The position numbers and the translations under genes were made by a program. This document shows, one piece after another, positions 11,019-62,232 of a stretch of DNA of 64,000 nucleotides. The notes under the pieces were generated by a model. It worked only from the letters and a program-made list of their open reading frames with translations, was not told where the DNA came from and made no database searches. Positions within the stretch are counted from its first letter, which is position 1, and every line of letters starts with the position of its first letter. Source of the DNA: Penicillus capitatus (lineage: Eukaryota > Plantae > Chlorophyta); assembly GCA_965649825.1 (NCBI GenBank), contig OZ287697.1, forward strand, positions 2,218,351 through 2,282,350, written 5' to 3'.

Positions 11019-14000
11019 TCAGGAAAAGGTCACTAGTGGACTGCCAGGATAGATGTCGAGTTCTCCATCATTGTTTCTTTCGATTTCTATCTTATCGAGA
11101 CCGATCGCCTCCTTCAGATAATCTTGGAGTTCTTCGAAAACGGCGGCCTCGTCGAAAGGAGCAGAGGATTGCAGTGCTTGTATTCCAGCTCCCTGTTGAG
11201 CCTGTTCCATTTTGAACTTGGTGAATGGTAGGGCCAAACGCTTGATCTGCTTCTCATCCTTGCCCTTTTCGGATGCCGAAGCCTGTATCTGAGAGATGAC
11301 CTCTCCGACCGTACCCTCTCCGAATGACTCCGTTTCTGCATTGAAGTGTTGCAGAAGCACTTGCAAGACGACTTCCTGCCATGGCAGGTATTTTGAGCTT
11401 GTGACGATCTTTGCTTCCTTGAAGTGTTTTCGGTCAGATGCTGCTGCTCCTTTCTTAGCTTTGGGCGGTGTCTCGAGTTTTGTCTTGCTTCGTCTTGTCG
11501 AAATGACAAAGTCTTCGATGAAAGATGCTGCTTGTTGGAGTCCGTAAGAGGCGTCTGGTGCCTCTGGCCATCCAGCAGTCAATGCAGAACCCTTTTTCTT
11601 AAGGAGATTGATCCAAATGTGGTCCATCGTGTGCGGTGCAAAGGGCACAAGCAAGAGTGTCGATACTTCCAGATAGCGCTCTATCAAGGACCGGTTCATC
11701 GGTACATGCTTACAGCCGAATCGGTAGGTATCTCTTGCTGCCATGAGATCAAAGCAACTGTACTTTAGGGCATCCCTGAAGAGCATCTTCTCGTAGGCAG
11801 TGCGGGATCGATGCACGGCAACATTGATGGCGTTTTCGAAGACGCGTTCGAAGAAGGTAGTCGGTGGTCCACTGGTCAAACCCTCTTTGGACGCCAAGAT
11901 ATCTTCGATCCATGTCAGCTCTTTTGTCAGACGCAAAATTGCAGCATTGGCCGCCGTCTGCTCAAAGTTGGCATCGTCCAGTCCATCTCCTGCATCTGCC
12001 AAAGCAATGCGTACGGCATCCGCCGAATACATCCCGATGGCCTGAAGTGACATTTTGCACTCTGGGCAAGATGAATGGAAAAAACCTGTTCCAGGGTGAG
12101 GAAATTTCCTTCGGATTTTGACATCTTGTTTGCGTTCAAAAGCACATGGCCATTGCAGCGAAAGGCTTTTGGCCAGTACTTTCGTGGCCAGAAGGCTGTA
12201 TGGTTGTAGAGGGTAAAGGTGAGATGGTTCTGGATCAAATCGTATCCAGATACCCGAACATCAAACGGATACCAATACTCAAACTCTCTTCGCATCTTCC
12301 GCAAGAGCTCCTCATTGATTTGCGTCTTTGGCATCTCTCCCAATCCAAACACGAAATCAAACACCTGAGCAATCCAAAGGTTGAGAAGGAATAGGGAGGA
12401 GAGGAGGTCGTTTTGACATCGTCAGTGATCTGTCCCGGTGGTATCGACGTCGTCATTGTGCCATACATATCTCCTTGTTGCAAAATGTGGGCGATGGTGT
12501 AGTAGGCCATGTAGATGGTGGAATCTGAGAGAGATTCAATGAGATACTCTGGATCCCAGGGAAGGCGCGTTCCCAGTCCATAAGATCGAGAGACGGCCCA
12601 TTTCTCCAGCCATTCAAGGCACCGCTCAAACTTCTCTCTCGCCTCGCTGCTATACGTTTCGAGCTGTGCTAGGCATTCTTTCGTCATCTTTGCCCACTCT
12701 TCCTCGCCGTATGTGATATACCACTGGTCAGTCAATGCCACCACACACGCATCGCCTGATCTCGACACGACTTTCGATTCCGGTTCGCTGTAGAGCAATG
12801 CCTGGCCGCTTTCCACAAATTTCTGCTTGATACGAGGCTTCGCTTCCGACACCTTATGTCCAGTATACTCTCCCACGATCATGATACCTTGGTTGAATCC
12901 CTTCATGTAAGTCTTCTCCTTTGCCTGCGCAAGCTTGTCCACTTCATGCTGATTCTTAATTTTGAGCTCGTCGCACACGGTGACAGCAGCTGCATTTCCA
13001 AAACCTACATGCAGGAGTGTCTGTCCGTCGTCTGTGCGAGAACTGTCATCGAAAGCGACCTTCGATTTCAATGATGGGAATGATATCGAATGGCATCACC
13101 CATGCATCTTCCACTCCATACTTCTCTTTCATTTTGTTCTTGTTCTCTTTCAGATCTCTCAAAGCGATGTGATCATCTGGTGCATCTGAAGGCACACTGG
13201 TGACAACACCTGTTCCTTTGTTCATCTTGATCGTCAGCAAAGGTAATCCATAGATAACGTCATGTGGACAGTTGGGCGAAGATACGGGCAGGCCAATCAA
13301 ATCCTGTCCCTTGATACGCAGCAGGCAATCGAGTTTGCCTGTCTCTGGCATCTTTTCTTGATAAGACAGGTTCATTGCCGAGCGCTCGGACATGATGTAG
13401 ATTTCATTGTCCAATCCACGATAGGCGCCGTACTCTCCCGAGGGAAGAACCCAGTAATTGGTCTGTCCATACATCGTCTCCGGGCGCAGCGTCGCCGCCA
13501 TTAGATAGACAGGTCCCTTGCCTTCCAGTACACTTAATGCTTCCGTCAATTTCTGGACTTGCATTTTGATCAGGACATATTCTTGGGGAAGGACGCCTTC
13601 TCCTTCGGATCGATCATGATCAGCGCAAGGTTGACCGTCCAGAGGTGAGTAGATGGCATATCTCTTGTCCTTGATGACACGGCCATCTTTGTGGAGTCTA
13701 CGGAATTGCCATTGAATGAAGCGATCGTAATAGGGATTGCGATCGGTTGTGATAAAGGACCTTCTCCAGTCGATACCGCATCCCATGGCCTTGAGATCCA
13801 CGACAGCCTTCTCGGGAAAAGAATCCAACCAGTAGTCAGCATCTCTGAACAACAGGCCACTGAATCACACAGAGCTGTTTGCTTGACGACGACACCGGTA
13901 TTTCGCAATTTCTTCTGTAGGAATATCACTCATCTCGAGTATCTGCCATTGATACTTTGCCTTTCCGGCCTTCGATGCAACCTTCGTTTTCTTCCTGGCA

Positions 14001-14605
14001 AATTTGGCACCCTCTCCCCCGCTTGCTGTATCTCTCTGAAACACAGTTGTCTTGTCTAGCACAGGTGCTGCTTCATCGCAATGTCTCTACCTTTTCAGCA
14101 GGCGCCTCTTCCTCTTTGTCCTGAGGAAATACTGGAGGACATCCAAACTGACGGATTTCTCTATCCAGTTTATCGGCACACGCCTGCATCCTGTCGATTC
14201 AGGGGATTCTGAAAACGATGGAGTTGACAGTTTGCCTTGATGGGCATGCCTGTGCAGTGGAATCCTTGTGGAAAGAGCACACGCTTTCCCCTCAGACGTT
14301 CGAATGCCGACTTGAATTCGAGCTTGGATAAACTGAAGGCGTGTCCCAAATGAAGCAGACCATTCATGTAAGGATAGGGAAAGTTCCCAAAGAATTTCTC
14401 TCCCTCTACTGGCGGCGTCTCCGGAGCATCGACTTCGAAGATCTTAGCAGCTTCCCATTCTCTCTGCCGTGCCTTTTGGATCTCCAAGAGCAAATCACGC
14501 CGTGTCGTGTTCTGAAGCTAAACGTCATACGGCGCCGCCTCCATCGTCGAGTGTTGTTGTTGGGCGGCGCACCTCGTCATCGGTCGGGTTAGAGGAGGAC
14601 GTCAT
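11019..14605 (-). CDS. LARS: Cytosolic leucyl-tRNA synthetase
   Basis: [14 protein letters not shown] (HIGH), [61 protein letters not shown] (KMSKS). First exon [11 protein letters not shown] inferred. Confidence 0.97.
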
Positions 14606-14784
14606 TCGAGCTGACGGTGAGAGAGATGGGCGCAATCGCACGAAACGACGCGTGATACTCGAGCGAATTGCGAACAGTTTTACGAAATTGCGTATGGATG
14701 GACGATTGTCTCACTCGATCCAGTGACAGACATGCGCCGTTTTTTTCGTGCACCACGCGAACCACTGGATTCGAGAATGGCGTC

Positions 14785-15776
14785 TTATACAATGACGATT
14801 GCAGGAACAGCCTGAATCGCCACGTTCTCCTGACGTTCATCTCGTTGCATACGATCGACCATGTCTGGAGCCGGTCCATTCACTTCATTCTGTCCAGCTT
14901 GGAATTGCGCACAGCGCATTAACTGACAAGACCATGTGTATAGGATAGCAATCAGCAGACCTGAACACACCACACATCATCCATCACCCATTCCTCAGAC
15001 CACATGAGAGATGGATTACCTGTGACGAGCGCAGTGACAATGGTGACTTTGAAGAACAGAATACAGACGATGGTGACAACCCACGTCATCCGGATACAAT
15101 CAAAGACATCTGTGGCTGACGGATAACGTCCTCTGGAGGCATCGGTTGGGTCATCAGAGGCCTGCTGCGATCCAGCATCTGATCGTGGCTGAGGGGGGCT
15201 GAGATTGGCAATCGGCGTTCGGCACACATCACATGTCAAATCTCCCTTGATATCCACCCACTTCTGAGCACAATCCTTGTGTCGCAGCGCAGCGTCGCCC
15301 TTGCATTGACAGTCCAGTCTTATGGCTTGGCCGGATTCGAAGTCTTCAGGCGACAATGGTTCCAGACAGATGAGGCAGATCTTCTCGGACGATGACCCAC
15401 TGCTGCCGTTTGACATGGAGGCATAACTGAGCAGACCAGGCAGAGTGGCCACGGATCTATCGATGGGTGCTCGGGCTGATACTGGTAGTGGATCAGCAGT
15501 ATTAGAAATTTCGATTTCTCCCTGAACATCGCTATGAACTGCATTGGAAGACAAAGACTCATCTGTTGGTTCATCGTTCCTGGACAATCCCGATGGTCCC
15601 GGTCGAGGATCGACGTCGAAGGAGGAATTATGAGAGGCACTAGAAGATTCGACGTCGACGGAATTGGGTACAGTGTCATAGCGCCTAAACAATGGGTCAA
15701 TGGAGAAAGTGTGAGAAGAGGGTAAGAACCCTACCGACCAAAAAAGGGCCACCGAAATGTCGACCATGGGGCCCAA
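14785..15776 (-). CDS. RING-CH (C4HC3, MARCH-like) membrane E3 ubiquitin ligase
   Basis: CLIC-x-CQC-x-HKDC-x-W-x-CDVC spacing, followed by hydrophobic segments (IRMTWVVTIVCILFF; CSGLLIAILY). Start position uncertain. Confidence 0.8.
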
Positions 15777-16101
15777 CCAAAATTCCGATCTGTAAAAGAC
15801 GTATGCGTCAAAAGGCGAAACACGAAAGGGGCATTACTCGGCAAAAGCGGCCGCCGGTCGTTACTGTTGTTCTGTGGGTCGGACATTGGCAACGCACCTG
15901 AGGTTCTCTAAGATATAGGACTCAAAACAACTTAAACGGTGCAGAGAAGGAAACAGAAATGATAGAGACTGAGAGCGAACAGCTGAATCAATCGAAACGT
16001 GTTCTTTTTACTTTCCGCGTCAGAACCTTAAGGGAAACGATGTTTACGCGCGATAGGACATCGTCGAACCACATCTTCTTGGGCAAGCGTCACATCATCA
16101 A

Positions 16102-18518
16102 TCATTCTAAGAGCATGCCTCGTGATCGTTCCATCATTTTCTTGACATTGGCGTCCTGGAAAGACTTCAAGAGAGTGGTGCCGTTCATGAGATGCGTTGT
16201 GGCGATGACGAATTTTGTCCTGCCTCCACTCAAACTGCTCAAGAATCGAAGGGCAGAGATCTCAGAGAAGGTGACACCACCGATGAACACCACCAGAACT
16301 GTCTCCCCTCTCTCAGAGAGAAAACTGCGCTTGACCCCTTCCATCTGCGCGAAATCCGCAGAATTCATGTCAAAGTGCGTTCCCGGCAGCAGATTCACGG
16401 CATCCATGCCACGTCCCTTCCATCCCGTCATCGCATTGAAATCCAAACTGTCAGCTAAGGATTGAGTGAGAGAAGGGAGGATAGAGAGATGGAAACAGAC
16501 CGCGTGAGAATGTACTGGAGCGATGTTGTTTGAGAGTGAGCTCAACGAGGCGGATGCTAAGGGGAGCATAACCCCAGTAGATGTGACTGATGTCCGACGG
16601 TCTCGCATCTGGATACAAACAATCGTCCGAGGACAGGAGAAGCGTTTTGGCACGCACCTGTTTCGTCTTCCTCATTGATGGAAAGATTCAGAGACCGACG
16701 AATCGTTGGAAATGTGTTCTTGGATTCCTGTTTGGTGAAGAGTAGTCCAGCCATCTCCAGATGGGTCATCAAACTTAAGTTCTCATAGCTGCCACACAGA
16801 GGTCATCTCAGTGAGTTTGCGTTCGTTTTGGAAAGGCATTGTCGTGGATACCCGTAGCAGAGGAGCATGGTTTTTCTGAGTGCGTCATTGACTTTCTTTG
16901 GAATGCCATTGTTTGTGATGCAGAGAAGACAGAGGAGGCGAAGAGCTTCGAAGAAATCGCATCGTTTAATCATCATGTCCTCCACATATCGATAACCCTC
17001 TTCAAACGCTCCTTCCTCGACAATCTGCAAGAACGAAGAGGCCGTCGTCTGGCATTTCTGTGAAGAGATAGATAGAATGGCTGGCCTGGCGTTCAACGTT
17101 GATACGATCTTTGAAATCCTCTCCAACCATTTTCTTAGCAATCGGTTCGCTGATGTTTGAATGCATTTCTGTAGAACCGAGTTGCATCAGTCTGCCAAAC
17201 AGACGATCTACTCAAGTAAATGCGTTGTGCGATGGTGTAGTGTGACCGATTGGCGAATTCTCGCATCTCTGATACACTCTTGCTGGACGTGTCTTGCTTG
17301 ATTGACTGCCAGTCATGCTTCATCTTCTGAACCCAGTCACGTATACGAGGCGCCGCTTTGTGCCAGGGAACATCACGCATCTCGCTGTGCATTGGATCGG
17401 CACTGTTGAGAATGTACTTCTTCTTCTCTGTTGCTCCAGTTCGATCTGTGACGTTCACGTAGACAACATTCGTCTTGATACCCAGAATCTCGTCGATCAT
17501 CCCCTCGTACGTCACTTGTGTCATGAGAGGCGTGACAACATCAACAGCTCTGTTAAAGGGAAAGGAGACATGAATGAACATGGAGGGGTGAGAGTCTCTA
17601 CCTGTCCAGGAGAATCATGCGTTTGATGGTACCTGGCGGCGGAAGATCGCCCATTTCTTGACTCATTCTGGAACACATTTTCTCCACGGCTTCTGCTGCT
17701 GGTCCCTTTCCCATGGTGCGTGGAATAACGCCCACGACACTTTGAAAATGCATCAGTGCCCTGCAACGATCGTTAGTAGACTGAACGCAGGTACCACGAA
17801 GACCTGGCCATGAGAAACAGTGATGTGCTGTCGCCGTCTACCGTCACTTCCCGAAACGAATCCGACAGCTCCAGAGACAGCACGTCCTCGTCGAAAGGAA
17901 TAAAATCCAATGGCATCTCTCCCAGAATCGTATCTCCCTTGACGCCTTCATCTTCAAACAGCTGAGAAGAAATCCAATTCATGTCAGGATTGACAGGTGA
18001 TGATGATCACTTCAGACCTCTCCTTACCTTTTCGCAGAGACAGGTCAGACGGGGAACAAAGTACACGGCATACTCATGCACCGTTTCCATTCTGTTTAGC
18101 GCCTTGATCTTTTCGGCTATGAGTTGTGCATTCATGACACTGGCACGTGACTAAGGCAAGCAGGTCACACAAATGTCCATTCCTTTCTCGTATGAGGCAG
18201 AGGTTGTACAATGAAGATGACACTCTTAGATGCAGGCTGCTGCAGTTCAGGGCTTAGATGGAACATCTCCTCCACTCCATGTTCAGATAGCACAGCTGCA
18301 GGAATGATCAATGCCAAGCATCCGTCGAGCGTCGGGTCCACCACCAGTGCCTTGGCTCCTATCCGAAAGCCTACAAGAGCGATGGATTGCTAAGAAGCCA
18401 AACCGATCATGACATCGATGATGTCGAGGAATTTTGCTCTGGCTTTTTCTCTGAGAGGTGCCAGAGGCACAGGGCCCTTCGTGAGGGGCGGTACTTTGGG
18501 TCCCTGCTTCGCCGACAT
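16102..18518 (-). CDS. VPS33: VPS33 (Sec1/Munc18 family, HOPS/CORVET subunit)
   Basis: KALVVDPTL, PLDFIPFDEDVLSLE, RAVDVVTPLMTQVTYEGMIDEILGI, VLVVFIGGVTFSEISALRFL, IATTHLMNGTTLL. Confidence 0.9.
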
Positions 18519-40474: not shown

Positions 40475-41559
40475 ATGGGCAAGACGCATCCAAACCCGCC
40501 TTCCGCTGACAGCAATGGGCTCTCTGGAAACTGGATGGCCTTGAAGAAGAAGCTTAAACGACAGAAACAAAAACTCGGAACTAACAAGGACACGCGACAG
40601 AGATTCGACTGGAAGAAGAGAGGAGTGAAAGAGACACCTTTGTCGGAGCATGATCATAGCCAAAGTCTCAAGCTCGTTAAGAAAGAGTTTGGATTGGAGG
40701 ATGTTGTGGCGATGGATTGTGAGATGGTCTCCGTCAACATGAATGGCAGCAAACGTGCGATTGCTGCGAGGGTCGCCATTGTAATATGAGTGCATGTCTG
40801 ATAAGAGTGTTGAGTGCTTTTGACCCAGGTCGATGGATTGGGAGACGTGCTGCTAGATACTTACATCGATTCAGGATGGATAGTGCTCGATTACCAGTCA
40901 ACAGTTCAATCTTTCTCTGCTCTCTAAGATCGATTTGGATGTTTGTAGCACCCGATACAGTGGCATTCAGCCAAGTCATCTGAGAAATGCCCCTTCACTC
41001 TCCGACATTCAACAAAAGGTGCATTTGGTCGAGAACACTTGGTATCAGAAATGGGTGATGCGTCAGTAAGCTGCATGTGCAGGTCGAATCCCTGCTGGAA
41101 AACAAAGTTGTTGTGGGTCATGCGCTGGATAACGATTTCGAAGCATTGGATATCGAACATCCCGGCCACAGAACGAGGGACACCTCAAAGTTTGGACGCT
41201 TCGAATCCCTCGACAGACACAGACCGGCTTTGCAGATATGAACCTCTAATGATTGGAATGGACGGCGAAAGAGTTCCTCACGGCCGTGCTTTAAGAAGAT
41301 TGGCGAAACATCAGCTGCACATGGACATACAGGTACTTATGTGTATGGTAGAGGAAGAATCTATAATGTTTGATGTCTCTATCACAGAACGGGGCGCACA
41401 ATCCTGTCGAGGACGCCAGAGCAGCACTCTACCTCTATCACAATCATAAAGAAGTCGATATTTACCTCAGATTCAGTTCTTCTCCAGACATTGGATTGCT
41501 AACAGGCATGGGAAGCGAGCTTGATGTCTACTGTTGTGTCTCATCTGTCAACGATGTGA
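40475..41559 (+). CDS. REX4: RNA exonuclease 4 (DEDDh)
   Basis: SGNW...KK basic N-terminus; VAMDCEMV, ARVAIV, VVGHALDNDF, RDTSK, ALRRLA, HNPVEDARAALYLY. Confidence 0.88.
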
Positions 41560-41669
41560 CATGTCAGAGAACGTCGATTGGTCGGTGCAACCTGTCCCGT
41601 GGTTCACCGTTTCATCTATCCTCACAGTGAATAATTGTTACCAAACGTACTTTTCTTGTGGAAGTTAAC

Positions 41670-42578
41670 ATGCGGGGTGTTTTTGTGATTTCCGTGTTTC
41701 TCACGTTTGTTTTGCTGTTCACTCGTGCGCAGAATGACGCAGGAGGAAAATCTTCTACCGACGTCGAGAACTATGTGACCTTCCCTTCCATCGTCACTGT
41801 CAAGGGCAACGTTCCAGAAGCGCCTTCCTGTGGAGGAACACTTTTAGACGACCACGTTGTTCTGACAGCTGCACAATGTGTTGTGGGTGCTGGGAACACA
41901 ACACGTCTCCCGAACGTCGTGCTGGACTCATTGAATGCTCAGAGAACGAACCGAATGCCGCAGACACGCATCACGATGGAGACCACTGTGTATCCTGGTT
42001 ACACTGGAGTGATTCGTGATGGTAATGACTTTGCCCTTCTTCGCCTGGACCATACTGTTGCCCCTTTGAAGAATGTGAAGATTTATCATGGAGATATCTC
42101 TTTCGAAACAAACCTCGTGATTATTGGAGCAGCTGGAGAAGCTATTCGAATCCGATCTGCCACAGTTGCGGATCCAGCAGAGTGTGAGAATGCTGGAATG
42201 CTGCTGGACAAAGAATCGATGGTTTGTATGACTGGCGAGATTCCGTGCGATGGGGATGAAGGAGGTCCCATTTTAGATGCTAAGACTGGTAACCTTGTGG
42301 CTGTCGTTTCATCGACGATTGATTGCAAAGGCGGCAGTAGTAACACACACTTGGCTGTTATGACAGTAAGGAATCCGAAAATCCTTGATTGGATTCAACA
42401 GACCGCGAGTGATCTGGAATACACAGCATCGTTGAATCTGGCACCCCCTGTCATCGCCTTCGATGGGCCGTCTTCTGATCATACTGTCTTGTCAGTTCCT
42501 GCCCCAGAAACAGATGAGGATCTTAGCGAAGATGAAGCAGACGATGAAATGGTGTACGATCTTCTTGGATTCCTGTAG
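41670..42578 (+). CDS. Secreted trypsin-like (S1A) pseudo-protease, copy 1; intronless
   Basis: Signal peptide; CGGTLL...VLTAAQCV (His to Gln), NDFALLRL, CDGDEGGP (Ser to Glu); acidic tail. Confidence 0.88.
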   Translation: MRGVFVISVFLTFVLLFTRAQNDAGGKSSTDVENYVTFPSIVTVKGNVPEAPSCGGTLLDDHVVLTAAQCVVGAGNTTRLPNVVLDSLNAQRTNRMPQTRITMETTVYPGYTGVIRDGNDFALLRLDHTVAPLKNVKIYHGDISFETNLVIIGAAGEAIRIRSATVADPAECENAGMLLDKESMVCMTGEIPCDGDEGGPILDAKTGNLVAVVSSTIDCKGGSSNTHLAVMTVRNPKILDWIQQTASDLEYTASLNLAPPVIAFDGPSSDHTVLSVPAPETDEDLSEDEADDEMVYDLLGFL

Positions 42579-42908
42579 TGAGTTATACCTGTCCAGAAGT
42601 GCAATCAGATGTGCCATCTGCTTTCCAGATGATGAAATCTGATGCCGCCGTTTGTTTAGTGATCTTTCTGATCCGCATTCGTTATTCTGGTCGTTGTCGT
42701 CGTTGTCTTTCTTCCATACAGTCTATGGCCCATTAAGTTGTCGTTTGTTGTTTGATCAGATAGATGCATGCGGTTACTCCTACGTAGTCGGAGTCACGTC
42801 GTTTTCCACCACCCGAATTATTCTTTCTTCGTATTCGAACTGTAACCAGTACACGTATTGCAGACGTGCCCTTTCTCAAGCTATTCGTCGACGCACTTGA
42901 CGGGATAG

Positions 42909-43859
42909 ATGACCTTTGGGAAAAGAATGTACCATGACACCTCTGTATGCAAACAACTGTCGCTGTTTCTGTTGCTGCTATCTCTCCTATTAACCATTGT
43001 CCTCAGTCAGTCCGAAGAGAGTCTGAACGAGGAGGAGACGAAAGAATTTGTGAAGCGATATCCCTACATCGCCAACGTACGTGCATTCGGAAGATCAGTT
43101 TGCTCTGGGGTGCTCATTGGACCTTACACTGTACTCACAGCAGCGCAGTGTGTCGATTCACGAAACGGTCGCGAACTGAAACCGGAGCTCTGGCTCAATA
43201 CCACTCTGGCAGAGGGACCCGAAGACACCGCTGTCGTTCGTCAAGTCAGTGAGACTTTGTTTCATCCAGAGTATGCTGGAAATGCTAATGACGGATACAA
43301 TTTAGCGCTGCTGCAACTTAATGAAAGTGCAGCATCGTTGAGACCGATTCGGATCCCTCCTGAAGCCCTGGATGGACCTGAGAGTATCGTTGGCCGCATC
43401 TTCTCAATCTTGGGATTTGGCAGGACGAGTCTTTCAGGTGCCAGAACCACGACACTGCAGATTGCTGTGGTTCAAGTGTTGGATCCACAGACATGTATCG
43501 ATGCAGATATTGGATACCTGGAAGAACAAATGTTCTGCGTGGATAGTCAACATCCGTGTTCTGGAGCCCATGGTGGTCCTGTGTTCATTGATTCTGGCGA
43601 CTCTCGGAACGATGTGCTGTTCGGTCTGGTTGTTGGGACACCGTGTTTTGAAAACACTGAACTTGCTGGTGTGACTAGTATTTCAACGAATGCAAGTCTA
43701 TCATGGTTGCGACAGACAAGAGACGAGCTCGAAAGAAGAGCAATCATTCAGGACAGCATCACCACAGATGTGTTGGGACTACCCCCTGCACCCGAGCCTC
43801 TTGTGGAGATGCTGGAATTGGAAGACGACTTCGAAGACCTACTACTTCAGGGATTTTAG
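42909..43859 (+). CDS. Secreted trypsin-like (S1A) pseudo-protease, copy 2; intronless
   Basis: Signal peptide; CSGVLIG..TVLTAAQCV (His to Gln), YNLALLQL (Asp to Asn), CSGAHGGP (Ser to His); acidic tail. Confidence 0.88.
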   Translation: MTFGKRMYHDTSVCKQLSLFLLLLSLLLTIVLSQSEESLNEEETKEFVKRYPYIANVRAFGRSVCSGVLIGPYTVLTAAQCVDSRNGRELKPELWLNTTLAEGPEDTAVVRQVSETLFHPEYAGNANDGYNLALLQLNESAASLRPIRIPPEALDGPESIVGRIFSILGFGRTSLSGARTTTLQIAVVQVLDPQTCIDADIGYLEEQMFCVDSQHPCSGAHGGPVFIDSGDSRNDVLFGLVVGTPCFENTELAGVTSISTNASLSWLRQTRDELERRAIIQDSITTDVLGLPPAPEPLVEMLELEDDFEDLLLQGF

Positions 43860-44436
43860 AGAATATAGGTGTGATCGCGGTTCTCAGCAAAGAACGCATT
43901 CAATCCGACTCACTCGCTGTTCATAAAGTGTCTTAACATGTCGATCGGCATGTGTCATGTCTTTCACTTCAGAGCCACCCACTGTTTACATTATCCTTTC
44001 CTCGTCTACACAATCAGGTGATAGACAACTCAAATCCACCTATGTCGCAGAAAAAGATATGAACGTCGATTGTATTATTCTCAGGACTCGCGATTGCTAA
44101 CTGTATCATCCATCAAACACCATTCCTGTTGCCGAGAAGTGATAAATGGGTTTTCTTTGACATGCACAAGTATTGCTTCCAGAAGAGCGTCCACTCACAG
44201 AAAAGAAGAGTTGAGATTGTCCAGGTGCCCATTTCATACTGAAATGATAATATACTTCTATGGTCTAACAATGCAATTTCCGCATGGAGTCTTAATGACG
44301 GACCCCATCACAGTCATATTTCGACAAGGACAAAGCAGATATCAATGAAAGGGCACAACGAAGTCTCTCTCCCTTTAAACGCAGACGCACGTCCAGTATC
44401 TTCGGCCCATCTATCCCCCACACATGCACGCGCTCA

Positions 44437-45423: not shown

Positions 45424-46875
45424 ATGCTGCTACTCAGACATCGCCTGACATCGGCACTGCCGGCGTACTTAAGAGATGTGAGAAGCGTCGTGCCTCTGCT
45501 TAGTTGCGGACAACAGGGAAATCACGCGTCCGGAGGTACCAGTGGTTCTGTTGGTTTGTTCCCGGGACGGCATGACGACTCGTGATGCAGGATCGATCCG
45601 AGAATATGGTCATTTGACTTTGGATTTGGAGAACAAGGGACTGAAGAGGGGTCCCGGCGGGCGATCTTCGGTGAGTGGTGTGACGGCGACCGTCTTTGGT
45701 GCGACAGGCTTCTTGGGTCGCTATGTTGTGAACGCTCTGGCCAGAAGAGGTTCCCAAGTGGTCATTCCATATCGCTGCGACGAGCTTGAGATGATGCATT
45801 TGAAGCAGATGGGTGATCTAGGACAGGTAATGCCTGTCTGTCTCACATCGATGCTGCGGATCATGCACCTATGCAGATCATCTTTCTGCCCAAGTTTGAC
45901 ATATCCGATCGTCATCAACTCATCAAGGCCGTCTCCCGTTCGAATATTGTTATCAACATGGTTGGTGCCCACCAAGAAACATGGAATTTCTCGTTCCGTG
46001 ATGTCCATGTGGAAATAGCCAAACGCATTGCAGAGGCGACAACTAAAGCACCGGATCTGGAACGATTCGTTCATGTGAGTGCTATGGGTGCAAGTACAGA
46101 TGCCACTTCGCGAAGACTACGCAGCAAGGCAGAAGGTGATGAAGTCGTCAAACAGATCAATCCGGGTGTCACTATCATTAAGCCATCTTGTATGATCGGC
46201 GTCGAAGATCGATTCTATAACTGTCTGGCTACTCTTGGAAAATCTCTCCCCTTCGTTCCGTTGATCGATGGAGGCGACACCAAAGTGCAACCTGTTTACG
46301 TTAGAGATGTCTCAGATGCAATGATGCAAGTGCTGAAAGACATGAGCACCAGTGGCAAGACCTATACACTTGCTGGACCAGAGGTGATGACGTAAGTCCA
46401 CCACCGTCGATAGTGCACTCGCTGTGTTTACTCCTGATTCCTGACATATCTGTTTGTCCTCAGCATGAAGGAGGCAACAGAGTTGGTGTTCTACCTGATG
46501 CGTGAGAAGCTCTATGCCTTGCCCTATCCTTCTGTCCTCGCCAAAGGATCCGTCCTCTTCCACACACTCTTCCACAGATCCGTGAGTTATTTGATAGCAT
46601 ATGTAAACGCCCTATTGTATGAAGGGTGTCTGCAGTTGCCATTGCATTTCATGAACTACATGCTGACAGCTGATTTTATCGATGAGTTGGCGAAGGACAA
46701 CGTCCTGTCAAGTGATGAATTGACTTTCAAGGACTTGGGAATGAAGCCCAGAGACACAACGCGCGGCATCAGTGTGGATCACATCAGATACTTCAGATCA
46801 GGAGGATATGCTTACGGGACCATTGTTGGACAACATGATGTCCCCGAGCGTTTCTTGCAACGCACTAAAGCATAG
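45424..46875 (+). CDS. NDUFA9: Mitochondrial complex I 39-kDa subunit
   Basis: [60 protein letters not shown]; mitochondrial-like presequence. Confidence 0.95.
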
Positions 46876-48823
46876 GCGTCCATCCTCCTTTCCGTTTCAA
46901 AAAACGGCCATTCCCAACAAGTCCAAAGGCATAGTCTTGTGGCTTTACGGCACCACCCGGCTGAAACAAGTGTTCCCTGATGAAAGTCCATTTCGATTTG
47001 TTGAAAATGTCATCTCCGATGTTCGTGTTCCATGCGAGATTGGCAATTCTCCGAGAGAAGAGATAGGAATAGTATCGTGCACCGTACGTTGTCAGATGCG
47101 TTAGCCATGCCTCTTTGAATGTGCCTGGGACATAAGGAACAGACCCGTTCTCCGAGACAACACGCTCCAGTACTTCCCCCGTCGTCCATTCTGCCTCTGC
47201 ATGACTTTCAGCATGGATAAGCTGATCAAATAGAGCGATCTGGATCTGTTCCTGTGTTCTTAAGCTTGAGAACAGACGATTCACTTTGATCAGATTTTCT
47301 AACGACGTTCGAGGAGTGAGCAGATGAGACTTGCGGTTGACGCCAGCCAGATACTGCAAGGCATCAGGAGAATATGCCATGTTTTCAAAGAAGTGCGAGG
47401 GAATCTCAACCAGATCCAACGGTCCTCGTGTTCCAAAGAGATGCTGAAACCGTGTCTTGGACAACAACGAGTGCAGGACATGACCAAATTCATGCAACAG
47501 ACTTCTCAAGTCGAAGAAGCTCAGTCTCCTGGAGGAGAAGTTGGTGATCAGTGCAATGATTGGCGTCTGATATTGACCATCATGCAGGTCCCTTCCACAC
47601 CTCAATGTATAGTGTGCGTTTTCTGGTCTCTTGTTCTGTCTTCCCAACAAATCCAAGTAGAGGTGACCGATGAAATCACCATCCTTGGCTTGGCGAAATG
47701 CAAACGCCTGCACATTGCTATCCCAACAATCATCCGTCTCTAACTCAATCATCTCTATATCCATGCATCGGTCGAGAATTTGGGCAATTCCGTTGATGAC
47801 AGACTGCATGTCGAAATCGGCGAAGATGGCGGATCCATAGCTGTCTACAACTTGCTTTCGTTTCAGGGCTGTGTAGTAGGGAACGTCCCAAGCAGAAATC
47901 GCCGACCCTTTCATTTCTTGGAGAATCTTGATTTCGTCATCGGCGGCGGGCTTTAGATGCACAGCCATGTCTGTCAGATAGTCCATAACAGCTTCTGGAT
48001 CCACTGCAATAGAATCCTGCAGCTTGAAATGAGCGAAAGACTTCCAGCCTAGTGTGCCAGACCAAAGCCTCCTCACATTCAACAGTTCCTTCAACGTTTC
48101 CACATTCTGCTGAAGAGACTGAAAATGTGCACAATACGCTCTCTCCCTAAGGCTTTCGTCACTAACAGAATGTACGATCGCCAGATAGTGGGAGGGAGTT
48201 ATTGGCAGATGGTACTGCCCCTGATGTTGGACGCAGAGATCTCTCAGATGATCCGGAAGCATGGATGTGTCTTTCAAAGATAATGGATTGCTTTCCTTGT
48301 GTTCGGCAACGCATCTCTGAAATCTCATAGTCAGTGCATGCTCTGCAGATATATACTCTTGGACATCTTGACTCTTATTGCTTCCCATACCACAGTTCAC
48401 AAAATCTCGATGTAGGCTCTCTGCTACGATCTGTGTCTCCGACGTCCATTCTACGGAGGAGGATCTTGCAGCAAGAGATGCCTGTAATGCTGTGAATAAC
48501 TGCTCATTCGTGTTGAGTTTGCCAATATACTGAACAAGAAACTGCAGAGCACGTACAGAATGCGATCGCCAATTCTCGTCTGGATGATTGCTGTAGCAGA
48601 AATTGGCGACATCCGCAACGCGACAGACGGAGTCTGAGATCTCATCCAACACCGCGACCACTTCGGAACCCGGCGGAACGTGACCAATACGCGAGATCAG
48701 CCCATCCGTTTTCTTGATAGCCTCTCTGGTAACAGGAAGGAAATCTTCTGCGTTGTTGAGTCCATTCAGCCCGGCAAACCCCGTTAACTGCCTCAGAGCA
48801 ATCGAGACGAATCGTCGCGACAT
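46865..48823 (-). CDS. MIPEP: Mitochondrial intermediate peptidase (M3A metallopeptidase); intronless
   Basis: 652-aa single ORF; presequence MSRRFVSIALRQL; GHLYLDL, AHYTLRCGR, HEFGH zinc motif, GTRGPLDLVEIPSHFFE, HLTTYGARYYSY. Confidence 0.93.
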   Translation of the reverse strand: MSRRFVSIALRQLTGFAGLNGLNNAEDFLPVTREAIKKTDGLISRIGHVPPGSEVVAVLDEISDSVCRVADVANFCYSNHPDENWRSHSVRALQFLVQYIGKLNTNEQLFTALQASLAARSSSVEWTSETQIVAESLHRDFVNCGMGSNKSQDVQEYISAEHALTMRFQRCVAEHKESNPLSLKDTSMLPDHLRDLCVQHQGQYHLPITPSHYLAIVHSVSDESLRERAYCAHFQSLQQNVETLKELLNVRRLWSGTLGWKSFAHFKLQDSIAVDPEAVMDYLTDMAVHLKPAADDEIKILQEMKGSAISAWDVPYYTALKRKQVVDSYGSAIFADFDMQSVINGIAQILDRCMDIEMIELETDDCWDSNVQAFAFRQAKDGDFIGHLYLDLLGRQNKRPENAHYTLRCGRDLHDGQYQTPIIALITNFSSRRLSFFDLRSLLHEFGHVLHSLLSKTRFQHLFGTRGPLDLVEIPSHFFENMAYSPDALQYLAGVNRKSHLLTPRTSLENLIKVNRLFSSLRTQEQIQIALFDQLIHAESHAEAEWTTGEVLERVVSENGSVPYVPGTFKEAWLTHLTTYGARYYSYLFSRRIANLAWNTNIGDDIFNKSKWTFIREHLFQPGGAVKPQDYAFGLVGNGRFLKRKGGWTPML

Positions 48824-50488: not shown

Positions 50489-53884
<3,396 letters not shown>

Positions 53885-60024: not shown

Positions 60025-60327
60025 AACGTTTTCCGCCTAAGAAGTGCTTATCTCAGATTCCAGTAGAGACAGAAGCCGAAGAAGACAACATTAGGAAATA
60101 CACTTGGCAGCATTTCCGAAGTCGCGAACATCCTGAAGAATCGATCACATCGCTGTCTTTCTTGTAAGTGTCTTTTCATTTTCCACGTCACTCTGTCGTC
60201 TGACGCGACGTTCTGCCGGAACGCGCGTGAATCTCCCCGGCAGCGGGTTGGAAGTTTGTCGCGTTGGCAGCCCCTTTTTCTTTCAGACCACACTCGCAGC
60301 GTCACATTCCTTCGTCTGTCTGCAACA

Positions 60328-62232
60328 ATGGAGTACAAGGACTACTCTCTGCCAGAGTTTCCCCTGAATGTCATTGCCGAGGTGAATCAGACACAACTCG
60401 ATGTCAAGGACGATCCCATGGACATCGATGACTCCGCCTTGCGCGCAGACCCAGGCGTCGCCAATGAGGATAATGTCACAACGACGACGAATTCAGCTGT
60501 CGCCTATAAATCTACGCTCAGTGCTTGTCTGGATTTCTTTTACCAGGTGAACGACACAGCGTCGCTCGATAAGATGAACGAATTGATTGAGGCTTCTTGG
60601 AAAGAAGATGCCAATGTCACGCTGCGTCTCATTTTTCAGTTAAGAGACATACGAAAGGGAAAGGGCGTGTACAGACCCTTCCTTTACTGTCTCTCGTGGC
60701 TGAGGCACAACCATTTTCAGACACTGCTCTGCAACTTGGAGCACGTCGCAGAGGTCGGCTACTGGAAAGATCTGCTCGACCTCTTGGTCCTCGAGGTCAT
60801 GAGCGGAAAAAGTTATGAAGGATATTGCCAGGCTGAACAGAGACGGGCCATATCTGTCCGGAAGTGGACAGAGAAGAAGAAAATCACAGAACTGAACCTG
60901 GACAATCCCAAGCCCAAGCCCAAGCCAAATGTGAAGATTTGTCAGATTGCCAAAGATGGCAAAATTGACAGAGAGAAAGCAGCAAAGGCAGCAAGAGATA
61001 TGTTTGTGACTGACGAAAAGTATCGAATGCTTCATGTTCGGGTGGCATCGTTGTTTGCTGAATCATTGAAAAAGGACTTGACGGCCATGAAGGAAGAAAA
61101 AGGAGTGTCTTTGGCATCGAAATGGGCACCGACAGCTGTCAAACATCACGACAAGTACACGTTGATTGTGTCCTCAATCAGCCAGCTACTGTTTCCGCAT
61201 CACACTTTGCAGAAAGAAGGCCGCAGTTACGCACAGTATGTCTCTATTGCGAGAGATTTATATCGAAAGGTCTATTTGACGCCATTACGGCAGTACTCGA
61301 AGATTGCTGAGAGATACATGTCAGAAAACCGTTGGAACGAGATTCCTTTTGAAAGAGTGCCTTCCAAATGCATGAAGAGAAACAAAAGATTGTTTACGGA
61401 AAAAGACAAAGAGAGATTCGAAAAGTATTTGGAAGATGTGCAATCGGGAAAGAAAACGATCAAGTCATCTGCCATGTTCCCACATGAAATGGTAGCAGAA
61501 GTGATGGACAAGGACACAAGCACAATGGAAGAGGCTGTCCTCAAGACGATCCAGCTTCAATGGGAAGCTTATGTAAACAAGCTGAGAGAATCTGGATCGC
61601 TGAGCAGTTGCATGGCTATCTGTGATGTTTCAGGCAGCATGTACGGTATCCCCATGGAGGTCGCCATTGCACTGTCATTGCTTGTGGCAGATTTGGCCGA
61701 AGAACCCTTCAAAGGACTCGTTTGCACTTTTAGCGACGTGCCGGAACTCTTTGTTGTCCCAGATGGGCCACTCGATGTCAAAGTGCAGGCCACCTTGGGA
61801 ATGAACGTGGGAATGAATACTAACGTTGATGCCGTGTTCGATCTCCTTCTGGAGCGCGCCGTACAGAACAAACTTCCCAAAGATGATATGATCAAACGTC
61901 TTTTTATCTTCTCCGATATGCAGTTCGACCAAGCATCCGTTGAAGGGAAGACAAATTTTGATGTTGCAAAAGAGAAGTTCGTGGCTGCTGGTTACGATCT
62001 TCCGCAGATTGTGTTTTGGAATCTGAGGGGTGGAGGTGCTGGTGATTGGATGTATCCGGGTCATCCAGATACTGCCCCTGTCGTGAAATTCGAAGAAGGA
62101 ACAGCATTGCTCTCTGGATACTCAGGACAGATGATGAAGCTCTTCCTGGAGAATGACATTGAGTCATTTAATCCGGTCGATGTTTTGATGGAGTCGATCA
62201 AATCGTACACGTACGTGAGAGTGGTTGACTAG
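60328..62232 (+). CDS. DUF2828/vWA (TROVE-like helical domain plus vWA) protein; intronless
   Basis: TNSAVAYKSTLSACLDFFY, TLRLIFQLRDIRKGKG, GYWKDLL, SLASKWAP, MIDAS-like CDVSGSM, FSDMQFD, IVFWNLR, SGYS. Confidence 0.85.
   Translation: MEYKDYSLPEFPLNVIAEVNQTQLDVKDDPMDIDDSALRADPGVANEDNVTTTTNSAVAYKSTLSACLDFFYQVNDTASLDKMNELIEASWKEDANVTLRLIFQLRDIRKGKGVYRPFLYCLSWLRHNHFQTLLCNLEHVAEVGYWKDLLDLLVLEVMSGKSYEGYCQAEQRRAISVRKWTEKKKITELNLDNPKPKPKPNVKICQIAKDGKIDREKAAKAARDMFVTDEKYRMLHVRVASLFAESLKKDLTAMKEEKGVSLASKWAPTAVKHHDKYTLIVSSISQLLFPHHTLQKEGRSYAQYVSIARDLYRKVYLTPLRQYSKIAERYMSENRWNEIPFERVPSKCMKRNKRLFTEKDKERFEKYLEDVQSGKKTIKSSAMFPHEMVAEVMDKDTSTMEEAVLKTIQLQWEAYVNKLRESGSLSSCMAICDVSGSMYGIPMEVAIALSLLVADLAEEPFKGLVCTFSDVPELFVVPDGPLDVKVQATLGMNVGMNTNVDAVFDLLLERAVQNKLPKDDMIKRLFIFSDMQFDQASVEGKTNFDVAKEKFVAAGYDLPQIVFWNLRGGGAGDWMYPGHPDTAPVVKFEEGTALLSGYSGQMMKLFLENDIESFNPVDVLMESIKSYTYVRVVD

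Follow-up and report, generated by a model that had tools for sequence, protein, structure and literature searches.

Two adjacent genes of the green alga Penicillus capitatus encode chymotrypsin-fold proteins that lack the catalytic triad and are kept by purifying selection

A stretch of 64,000 nucleotides from the green alga Penicillus capitatus (Chlorophyta; GenBank assembly GCA_965649825.1, contig OZ287697.1, positions 2,218,351 to 2,282,350 of the forward strand), referred to here as the window, carries two adjacent genes for proteins of the trypsin family. Copy 1 (41670..42578, + strand) is a complete single-exon coding sequence of 302 codons plus stop, counted from the first ATG, and copy 2 (42909..43859, + strand) is a complete single-exon coding sequence of 316 codons plus stop; an intergenic spacer of 330 bp (42579..42908) lies between them. 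Both products are assigned to the pseudoproteases of the chymotrypsin (S1A) fold, with a triad that reads Q/D/E in copy 1 and Q/N/H in copy 2, and both genes are kept by purifying selection. It is likely that the two are selected, non-catalytic secretory proteins built on this fold, whilst any single specific role is far less certain than that general statement.

Sequence comparison places both copies in peptidase family S1A (PF00089). The Pfam Trypsin profile matches copy 1 with 61.9 bits (1e-16) and copy 2 with 92 bits (6e-26), against a cut-off of 20.6, and the matches cover positions 13-209 and 11-205, respectively, of its 220 positions. The six cysteines of the pairs C42/C58, C168/C182 and C191/C220 occur in the two copies and do not vary among 14 family members; Gly193 and the GGP motif at 196-198 are likewise present in both and invariant across the family. 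Together these results bear out the S1A scaffold that a preliminary description, made from the letters of the window, had claimed for both open reading frames (ORFs). Identity between the two proteins is 30% (E 5e-23), and their closest sequence matches in the PDB, with E-values down to 1.5e-16, are complement factor D, granzyme M, fungal and bacterial trypsins, elastases and kallikreins. AlphaFold2 models built on six-sequence alignments reached a predicted local distance difference test score (pLDDT) of 57 and 64 for the two copies, and with these low-confidence models the top PDB matches returned by Foldseek were all S1A proteases. Pfam searches of both copies found only Trypsin and Trypsin_2, with no accessory domain and no N-terminal clip domain, and just 15-30 residues separate the predicted signal peptide from the protease-like domain.

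Catalytic positions were assigned from a residue-level alignment to PDB structures. In both copies the motif TAAQC aligns onto TAAHC, giving the substitution H57Q; the Gln codon is CAA in copy 1 (41874..41876, +; motif at 41865-41879) and CAG in copy 2 (43146..43148, +; motif at 43137-43151). The Ser195 position of copy 1 is Glu (codon GAA, 42258..42260, +, inside CDGDEGGP), and this copy keeps Asp102 (42027-42029, +, in NDFALL) and Asp194 (42255-42257, +). In copy 2, position 102 is Asn (codon AAT, 43299..43301, +, inside GYNLALL) and positions 194 and 195 are Ala and His (codons GCC CAT, 43566..43571, +, inside CSGAHGGP), so that Asp194, the partner of an Ile16-type N-terminus, is also replaced in the copy 2 of this species. 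The alignments thus confirm the loss of the triad that had been proposed earlier, as Q57/D102/E195 in copy 1 and Q57/N102/H195 in copy 2, along with the two different Gln codons. An IVGG-like activation motif was found in neither copy, the segment 12 residues before the conserved PY being acidic or polar. In the alignment, therefore, both copies lack the His57/Asp102/Ser195 triad and the Ile16-type activation by which active S1A proteases are recognized. Glu195 is conserved in all three core members of the copy 1 group and Asn102 in seven of the seven closest orthologues of copy 2, in which position 195 is H, Q or L and hence unconstrained.

Two public metagenome contigs provide the comparison from which selection was estimated. 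L002 is 99.6% identical to the window over 17 kb and was taken as the same species, whilst L001, on a contig of 4 Mb, is 87% identical at the nucleotide level over 17 kb and was taken as a congener. With L001 as the partner, the method of Nei and Gojobori (NG86) puts the ratio of non-synonymous to synonymous divergence (dN/dS) of copy 1 at 0.18 (Fisher p 2e-16) and that of copy 2 at 0.31 (p 4e-10); estimates by YN00 and maximum likelihood for the pair range from 0.23 to 0.41. The corresponding values for two neighbouring enzymes, an M3 peptidase and a GH2 beta-galactosidase, are 0.16 and 0.20. The orthologue of copy 1 in L001 has 87% amino acid identity, and orthologues of copy 2 were found at 99%, 79% and 51-54% identity. 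Insertions and deletions tell the same way. The ORFs differ from L001 by three indels, all of 3 nt, whereas the spacer (84.5% identity) has eight, of 1, 2 or 4 nt, none of the eight being a multiple of three; across the spacer and flanks there are some two dozen, nearly all of 1, 2, 4 or 8 nt. Seven sites differ between the ORFs of the window and those of L002, five of them synonymously, and the two frames are uninterrupted in two species and also in more distant relatives. The preliminary description had set the keeping of the fold against a decay that a dN/dS near 1 would betray, and it is keeping that the two ratios and the in-frame indels indicate. A homologue of 51% identity was recovered from each of two independent sequencing runs as contigs of about 1.1 kb that share a 111-nt leader, and looks like a transcript.

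The intergenic DNA around the pair has a peculiarity of its own. The Jukes-Cantor distance to L001 in 42579-42908 and 43860-44436 is 0.17-0.20, about half the synonymous divergence (dS) of the flanking genes (0.34-0.43). Either these spacers are constrained as untranslated regions or promoters, or codon or base bias has inflated dS.

A profile of six sequences, searched exhaustively with HMMER, returned 28,607 S1A proteins at E-values up to 1e-3. The top-scoring long multi-domain matches were considered as algal poly-trypsins and proved to be animal polyserases (fish, annelid, insect and sea urchin), which are irrelevant here. The informative matches are single-domain proteins of 270-310 residues, which fall into two clades on neighbour joining: a copy-1 clade of five representatives (97% bootstrap) and a copy-2 clade of 13, including Caulerpa g121 and g131 (95% bootstrap). 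The triad is lost in every member of both, none combining Ser195 with His57 and Asp102. Position 195 is E, H, Q, L or K; position 57 is Q, S or R, and still His in Caulerpa g121; position 102 is D or N. Glu195 recurs in two members of the copy-2 clade, P0053 (Q/D/E) and Caulerpa g121 (H/D/E). In one divergent protein of the copy-1 clade, one residue shorter than the others, a Ser may align at 195, but positions 57 and 102 are Ser as well. The next outgroups, Bryopsis GMH37847.1 and P0135, read H/D/D, and the nearest catalytically intact relatives (H/D/D/S), judged by profile score and tree, include GMH36881.1 of Bryopsis sp. KO-2023. With an entropy of 2.35 bits, position 195 lies at the 76th percentile of the domain, and is flanked by the invariant Gly193 and GGP. 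The simplest history would be one in which Ser195 was lost first and His57 and Asp102 then drifted repeatedly. Judged from the alignments the inactivation is old, there being no functional triad in either clade, even in species as distant as Caulerpa.

Copies 1 and 2 probably share a dead ancestor, although this falls short of proof. When a profile of the copy-1 clade restricted to the core domain was used, 13 of the 13 copy-2-clade proteins (69-98 bits) scored above every other S1A domain (at most 61 bits), and this ranking, together with a C-terminal tail restricted to the two clades, is what argues for common descent. The shared TAAQC is weak evidence for it, because one change at the third codon position turns His into Gln and His57 has been lost repeatedly; a Caulerpa member nested in the copy-2 clade retains His57, and other members have S or R at that position. 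The earlier proposal that inactivation predates the duplication is supported in part, by the profile ranking and the tail, and it must contend with a tree in which the two clades are sisters in just 6% of neighbour-joining bootstrap replicates.

A large expansion of S1 proteases has been described in the Bryopsidales, with 189 genes in Ostreobium and 57 in Caulerpa, many of them predicted to be secreted (bioRxiv 10.1101/2020.07.21.211367). The best explanation for the two clades is that they arose inside this resident expansion. Literature searches found no description of this algal trypsin-fold family, and the Bryopsis genome preprint leaves proteases unmentioned.

Both proteins probably enter the endoplasmic reticulum and follow the secretory route, as suggested by their signal-peptide-like N-termini and by an N-x-S/T sequon (LNES or LNET) in nine of ten copy-2-clade members. 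The signal peptides were predicted by eye from the sequence. That of copy 1 would comprise residues 1-20 (41670..41729, +), with cleavage at TRA/QND (the slash marks the site) preceded by Arg2, a hydrophobic run of 14 residues and small residues at -1 and -3; that of copy 2 would comprise residues 1-33 (42909..43007, +), with cleavage at VLS/QSE, and is conserved in orthologues. In full, the predicted contexts are MRGVFVISVFLTFVLLFTRA/QND and ...LSLFLLLLSLLLTIVLS/QSEE. The layout is the same in both, a basic residue being followed by 14-16 hydrophobic residues, small residues and then Gln, and the x/Q cleavage pattern recurs across the trypsin-fold family. Copy 2 has a second in-frame ATG at Met7 (42927), and Met1 and Met7 (42909-42929) are both kept in the congener (P0040 compared with P0002). 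From the sequence the true start is ambiguous between the two, and the hydrophobic signal core is intact with either.

At the other end, each protein carries an extension beyond the protease-like domain. That of copy 1 has 47 residues (42435..42575, +; net charge -13) and consists of a Pro-rich linker, an acidic run and a terminal YDLLGFL; that of copy 2 has 41 residues (43734..43856, +; net charge -8) and consists of a linker, PPAPEP, an acidic run and a terminal FEDLLLQGF. The copy 1 tail is modelled as disordered (pLDDT < 40), and the copy 2 tail also has low pLDDT, with a short terminal helix predicted at 309-313. The last 60 codons of copy 1 show a dN/dS of 0.22-0.35 against L001. In the top 150 representatives the tail motif, in which an acidic run leads to a hydrophobic and often aromatic-acid-Leu-Leu end, is confined to the two clades; a few unrelated matches among them have merely acidic C-termini. 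Most, but not all, tails of the family end hydrophobically. The predicted signal peptides, read by eye, and the acidic tails with hydrophobic ends stand as first described. The whole proteins are strongly acidic (isoelectric point, pI, about 4.5; net charge near -24), as are the core domains (pI 4.4-5.4), and this overall acidity argues against binding to sulfated polysaccharides.

Several other uses of the tail were considered. Docking on a basic patch of the protein's own domain is unlikely, given the acidity of the core domains. Cytosolic motifs (Atg8-interacting, YxxPhi and acidic dileucine) were set aside because a protein with a signal peptide would be lumenal, and a glycosylphosphatidylinositol (GPI) anchor was rejected because the terminal hydrophobic stretch is just 3-6 residues long. 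A further likeness, useful as a lead only, is to the acidic exosite-docking sequences with Tyr that vertebrate thrombin ligands such as heparin cofactor II carry.

How such proteins might work can be sketched as follows. Two adjacent intronless nuclear genes of a siphonous alga of Bryopsidales type would each give rise to an acidic protein of about 30 kDa with a secretory signal, in which the S1A double-barrel fold is retained and serine catalysis should be impossible. Once the nucleophile had gone, His57 and Asp102 would have been at liberty to drift (to Q, S, R or H at 57 and D or N at 102) and position 195 would have been free to vary. Selection still retains the parts that shape the cleft, namely the three disulfides, Gly193, the GGP strand at 196-198, the TAAxC helix start and the barrel core, and since these are still selected, non-catalytic binding through the former substrate face is the most likely activity. 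The resulting module might bind a partner, protein or peptide, in the secretory pathway, the vacuole or the wall space; it could be a cofactor, decoy or inhibitor that either belongs to a protease or hydrolase system or is directed at one. The acidic tail with its aromatic-acidic-Leu-Leu end would be an addition of this family, which probably acts in sorting or docking or is removed as a propeptide.

A number of observations weigh against this picture, alongside the low support for the two clades as sisters. The conserved cleft motifs are also structurally important, and cleft binding is deduced from their conservation. Trp215 of the substrate-binding SWG strand is gone in all family members, which have SGT or SST, and copy 1 is without eight residues of the 140s loop, losses which imply that the cleft has been remodelled. 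The AlphaFold models, with their low confidence, are unfit for mapping a conserved surface or for analysing the tail. Conservation of the tail is chiefly one of composition and a short motif, and one family member, Caulerpa g131, has no tail.

The pair has the same GC content (0.475-0.479) as the whole window. Downstream of it lie an M3 peptidase (46868-48823, -), a single uninterrupted ORF of 652 residues, and a GH2 beta-galactosidase of LacZ type with all five domains (50489-53788, -), an uninterrupted ORF of 1099 residues that is syntenic in L001, L002 and a third metagenomic contig, L003, from a more distant species. A NAP gene of the neighbourhood has one short GT...AG intron of about 80 nt, and a Tyr/Trp-tRNA synthetase is a single ORF of 359 residues. 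The preliminary description had set the intronless pair apart from mostly intron-rich neighbours. The pair is indeed intronless and the NAP gene has its intron, but the M3, GH2 and synthetase genes are as uninterrupted as the pair itself, and the lack of introns is thus no distinguishing mark. Relatives of the M3 peptidase include metagenomic proteins of 50-89% identity, the best named match being Caulerpa lentillifera g117 (50%), and identity to plants, trebouxiophytes and diatoms is at most 34%. Together with the Caulerpa and Bryopsis sp. KO-2023 proteins in the trypsin-fold family, this places the window in a siphonous alga of Bryopsidales type, distinct from Caulerpa and from that Bryopsis strain. 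In relatives this peptidase has 651-653 residues, yet in L001 it is called at 927 (11936-14719), which suggests a different start, read-through or an artefact of gene calling. The LacZ gene, bacterial in style and intronless although its owner is a green alga, could itself go back to an old transfer.

The order GH2, Tyr/Trp-tRNA synthetase, M3 peptidase, NAP and trypsin-fold gene is common to L001, L002 and L003, the M3 peptidase of the last being 55% identical. In Caulerpa, the M3 orthologue is numbered g117 and the family members g121 and g131; read from this numbering, the same locus order is suggested there. L003 has one intact intronless gene of the copy-2 clade (15567-16499; 310 residues, with a signal peptide), and between NAP and this gene, at 14567-15106, lie pieces of another trypsin-like copy (such as '...IPCNGYEGSPVFF...'), the N-terminal and C-terminal halves of which are on opposite strands. 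This looks like a rearranged and degraded paralogue, and together with the intact gene it points to copies being gained and lost at the locus over time.

Elsewhere in the window, the region upstream of copy 1 (40475-41630, +) contains several short ORFs in which the DEDDh exonuclease motifs 'DCEMV' and 'HNPVEDA' can be seen by eye. These suggest an intron-containing RNA exonuclease similar to REX4, the isolated fragments of which are not scored by Pfam. At 60256-62232 (+) an ORF of 658 residues matches DUF2828 (4e-106) and DUF7788 (3e-63) and encodes a conserved protein of unknown function. Scans of the 64-kb window for tRNAs and against Rfam found no rRNA, tRNA or Rfam family.

Three accounts would make the pair something other than resident, selected non-enzymes. 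That they are decaying pseudogenes, functionless relics of active proteases, is scarcely credible: drift at all three catalytic positions, and of Asp194 too in copy 2 here, could be read in this way, but such relics would not be expected to show dN/dS ratios of 0.18 and 0.31 (p < 1e-9), frames open in two species and in distant relatives, indels that stay in frame in the ORFs unlike those of the flanks, and clades conserved across the Bryopsidales. Recent acquisition through horizontal transfer or retroposition, the two origins that the preliminary description had suggested, would explain the missing introns of both genes. S1A proteases are generally rare in green plants, and a review of Chlamydomonas describes an S1 protease with bacterial affinities. 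Such an origin is nevertheless very improbable and the suggestion finds no support, since the GC content matches the window, the flanking M3 and GH2 genes lack introns too, the locus order is shared by three species with the Caulerpa numbering consistent with it, and the nearest relatives are resident S1A genes of Bryopsidales, the live Bryopsis one included; neither a poly-A remnant nor a target-site duplication was found in the flanks in a check for exact matches made by eye. It is also improbable, if a little less so, that the copy-1 clade is still a hydrolase, in which Gln57 and Glu195 would form an eqolisin-like pair beside an intact oxyanion hole and activate water at the acidic pH of the vacuole. 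Q57, D102, D194 and E195 are conserved in three of three copy-1 core members, Glu195 recurs in P0053 and Caulerpa g121 of the copy-2 clade, Gly193 and GGP are invariant, and the dN/dS of copy 1 (0.18) is on a par with that of neighbouring enzymes. Nevertheless, no clan PA enzyme is known to have Glu as its nucleophile or base; the scheme is inapplicable to copy 2 and its close orthologues, with H, Q or L at 195; the conservation in copy 1 rests on three sequences; and Trp215 and the 140s loop are lost. If it were true, a Gln/Glu dyad would give the trypsin scaffold a new type of catalysis.

Within the preferred reading, that of selected, non-catalytic secretory proteins, a possible ranking of roles based on the sequences would place a cofactor or decoy in the alga's own S1A network above a tail-sorted vacuolar cargo released on wounding, and the latter above an inhibitor of foreign hydrolases. 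The wound-plug, lectin-like and cell-wall roles of the preliminary description, and the vacuolar sorting that it proposed for the tail, are speculative. The second of these, in which the tail sorts the proteins to the vacuole and wounding releases them into the wound plug or the aggregating cytoplasm, has a small but appreciable chance of being right. The tail is restricted to the family and ends in short exposed hydrophobic stretches (LGFL, LQGF, SALY, LLEI, DLLL), and C-terminal vacuolar sorting determinants of plants have similar hydrophobic ends and no strict consensus. However, some members end in acidic (IQVDE) or basic (GRRC) residues, and no connection of S1A proteins with the wound plugs of Bryopsidales turned up in the literature searched. 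The chance is somewhat slimmer that the proteins are inhibitors or decoys directed against foreign hydrolases of grazers or pathogens. Their architecture, that of a secreted single-domain dead S1A protein, matches such a role, and copy 2, which evolves faster (dN/dS 0.31), belongs to a clade that has duplicated repeatedly (g121/g131 and the L003 fragments), as would be compatible with an arms race. Glucanase inhibitor proteins (GIPs) are chymotrypsin-class homologues without proteolytic activity (PMC6168125). The likeness to them is one of general architecture, however, and GIPs are not known to have a counterpart of the tail.

The seaweeds of the order Bryopsidales are giant single cells, remarkable for their wound repair, and have an unusual expansion of chymotrypsin-type proteases, such as land plants do not have. 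Part of this expansion appears to have turned into conserved, selected non-enzymes with a private C-terminal motif, and the family of the pair is a candidate for studies of protease regulation, defence or sorting in siphonous cells. RNA interference and cytoplasm-regeneration tools exist for Bryopsis (PMC12961179). The value of the pair lies in a useful annotation and a modest evolutionary case, in which the nucleophile goes first and the rest of the triad drifts, rather than in a new kind of system.

Chymotrypsin-fold proteins that are catalytically dead form a well-known class, and by their sequences copies 1 and 2 are an algal branch of it. Azurocidin, haptoglobin, HGF and protein Z are secreted S1A pseudoproteases that work through binding. 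As in these, both algal copies combine an S1A fold and replaced catalytic residues with a gene under selection. One account of the serine protease homologues (SPHs) of insects describes S1A homologues that act by binding rather than cleavage (PMC4676143). The algal pair resembles SPHs, azurocidin, haptoglobin, HGF and protein Z in fold, disulfides, replaced triad residues and, so far as the N-termini predict, secretion. Unlike them, it has no clip, kringle, CCP or other partner domain and no Ile16-type activation N-terminus; it is very acidic (pI about 4.5) where azurocidin is basic, carries a family-specific acidic tail and belongs to a green-algal lineage.

The GIPs of oomycetes are also secreted single-domain proteins of chymotrypsin class that lack proteolytic activity, and they occur in small gene families (PMC6168125). 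They are effectors with which pathogens inhibit endo-beta-1,3-glucanases of the host, whereas the owner of the pair is a free-living alga. MamO of magnetotactic bacteria has a trypsin fold that has lost catalysis and been repurposed for binding metal ligands (PMC4794232); being an HtrA-like bacterial membrane protein that binds through a di-histidine site, it offers the algal pair an analogy only. The closest comparison is with the live S1A proteases of the Bryopsidales themselves, such as GMH36881.1, which have the motifs R-x-PY...R, G-[FW]-G-R-T-S and D-x-L-x-G-[IL]-V-S in common with the two clades. The live proteases differ in keeping H57, D102, D194 and S195 and in having no acidic tail, and some of them have an IVGG activation site and extra domains, such as ankyrin repeats or tandem protease domains.

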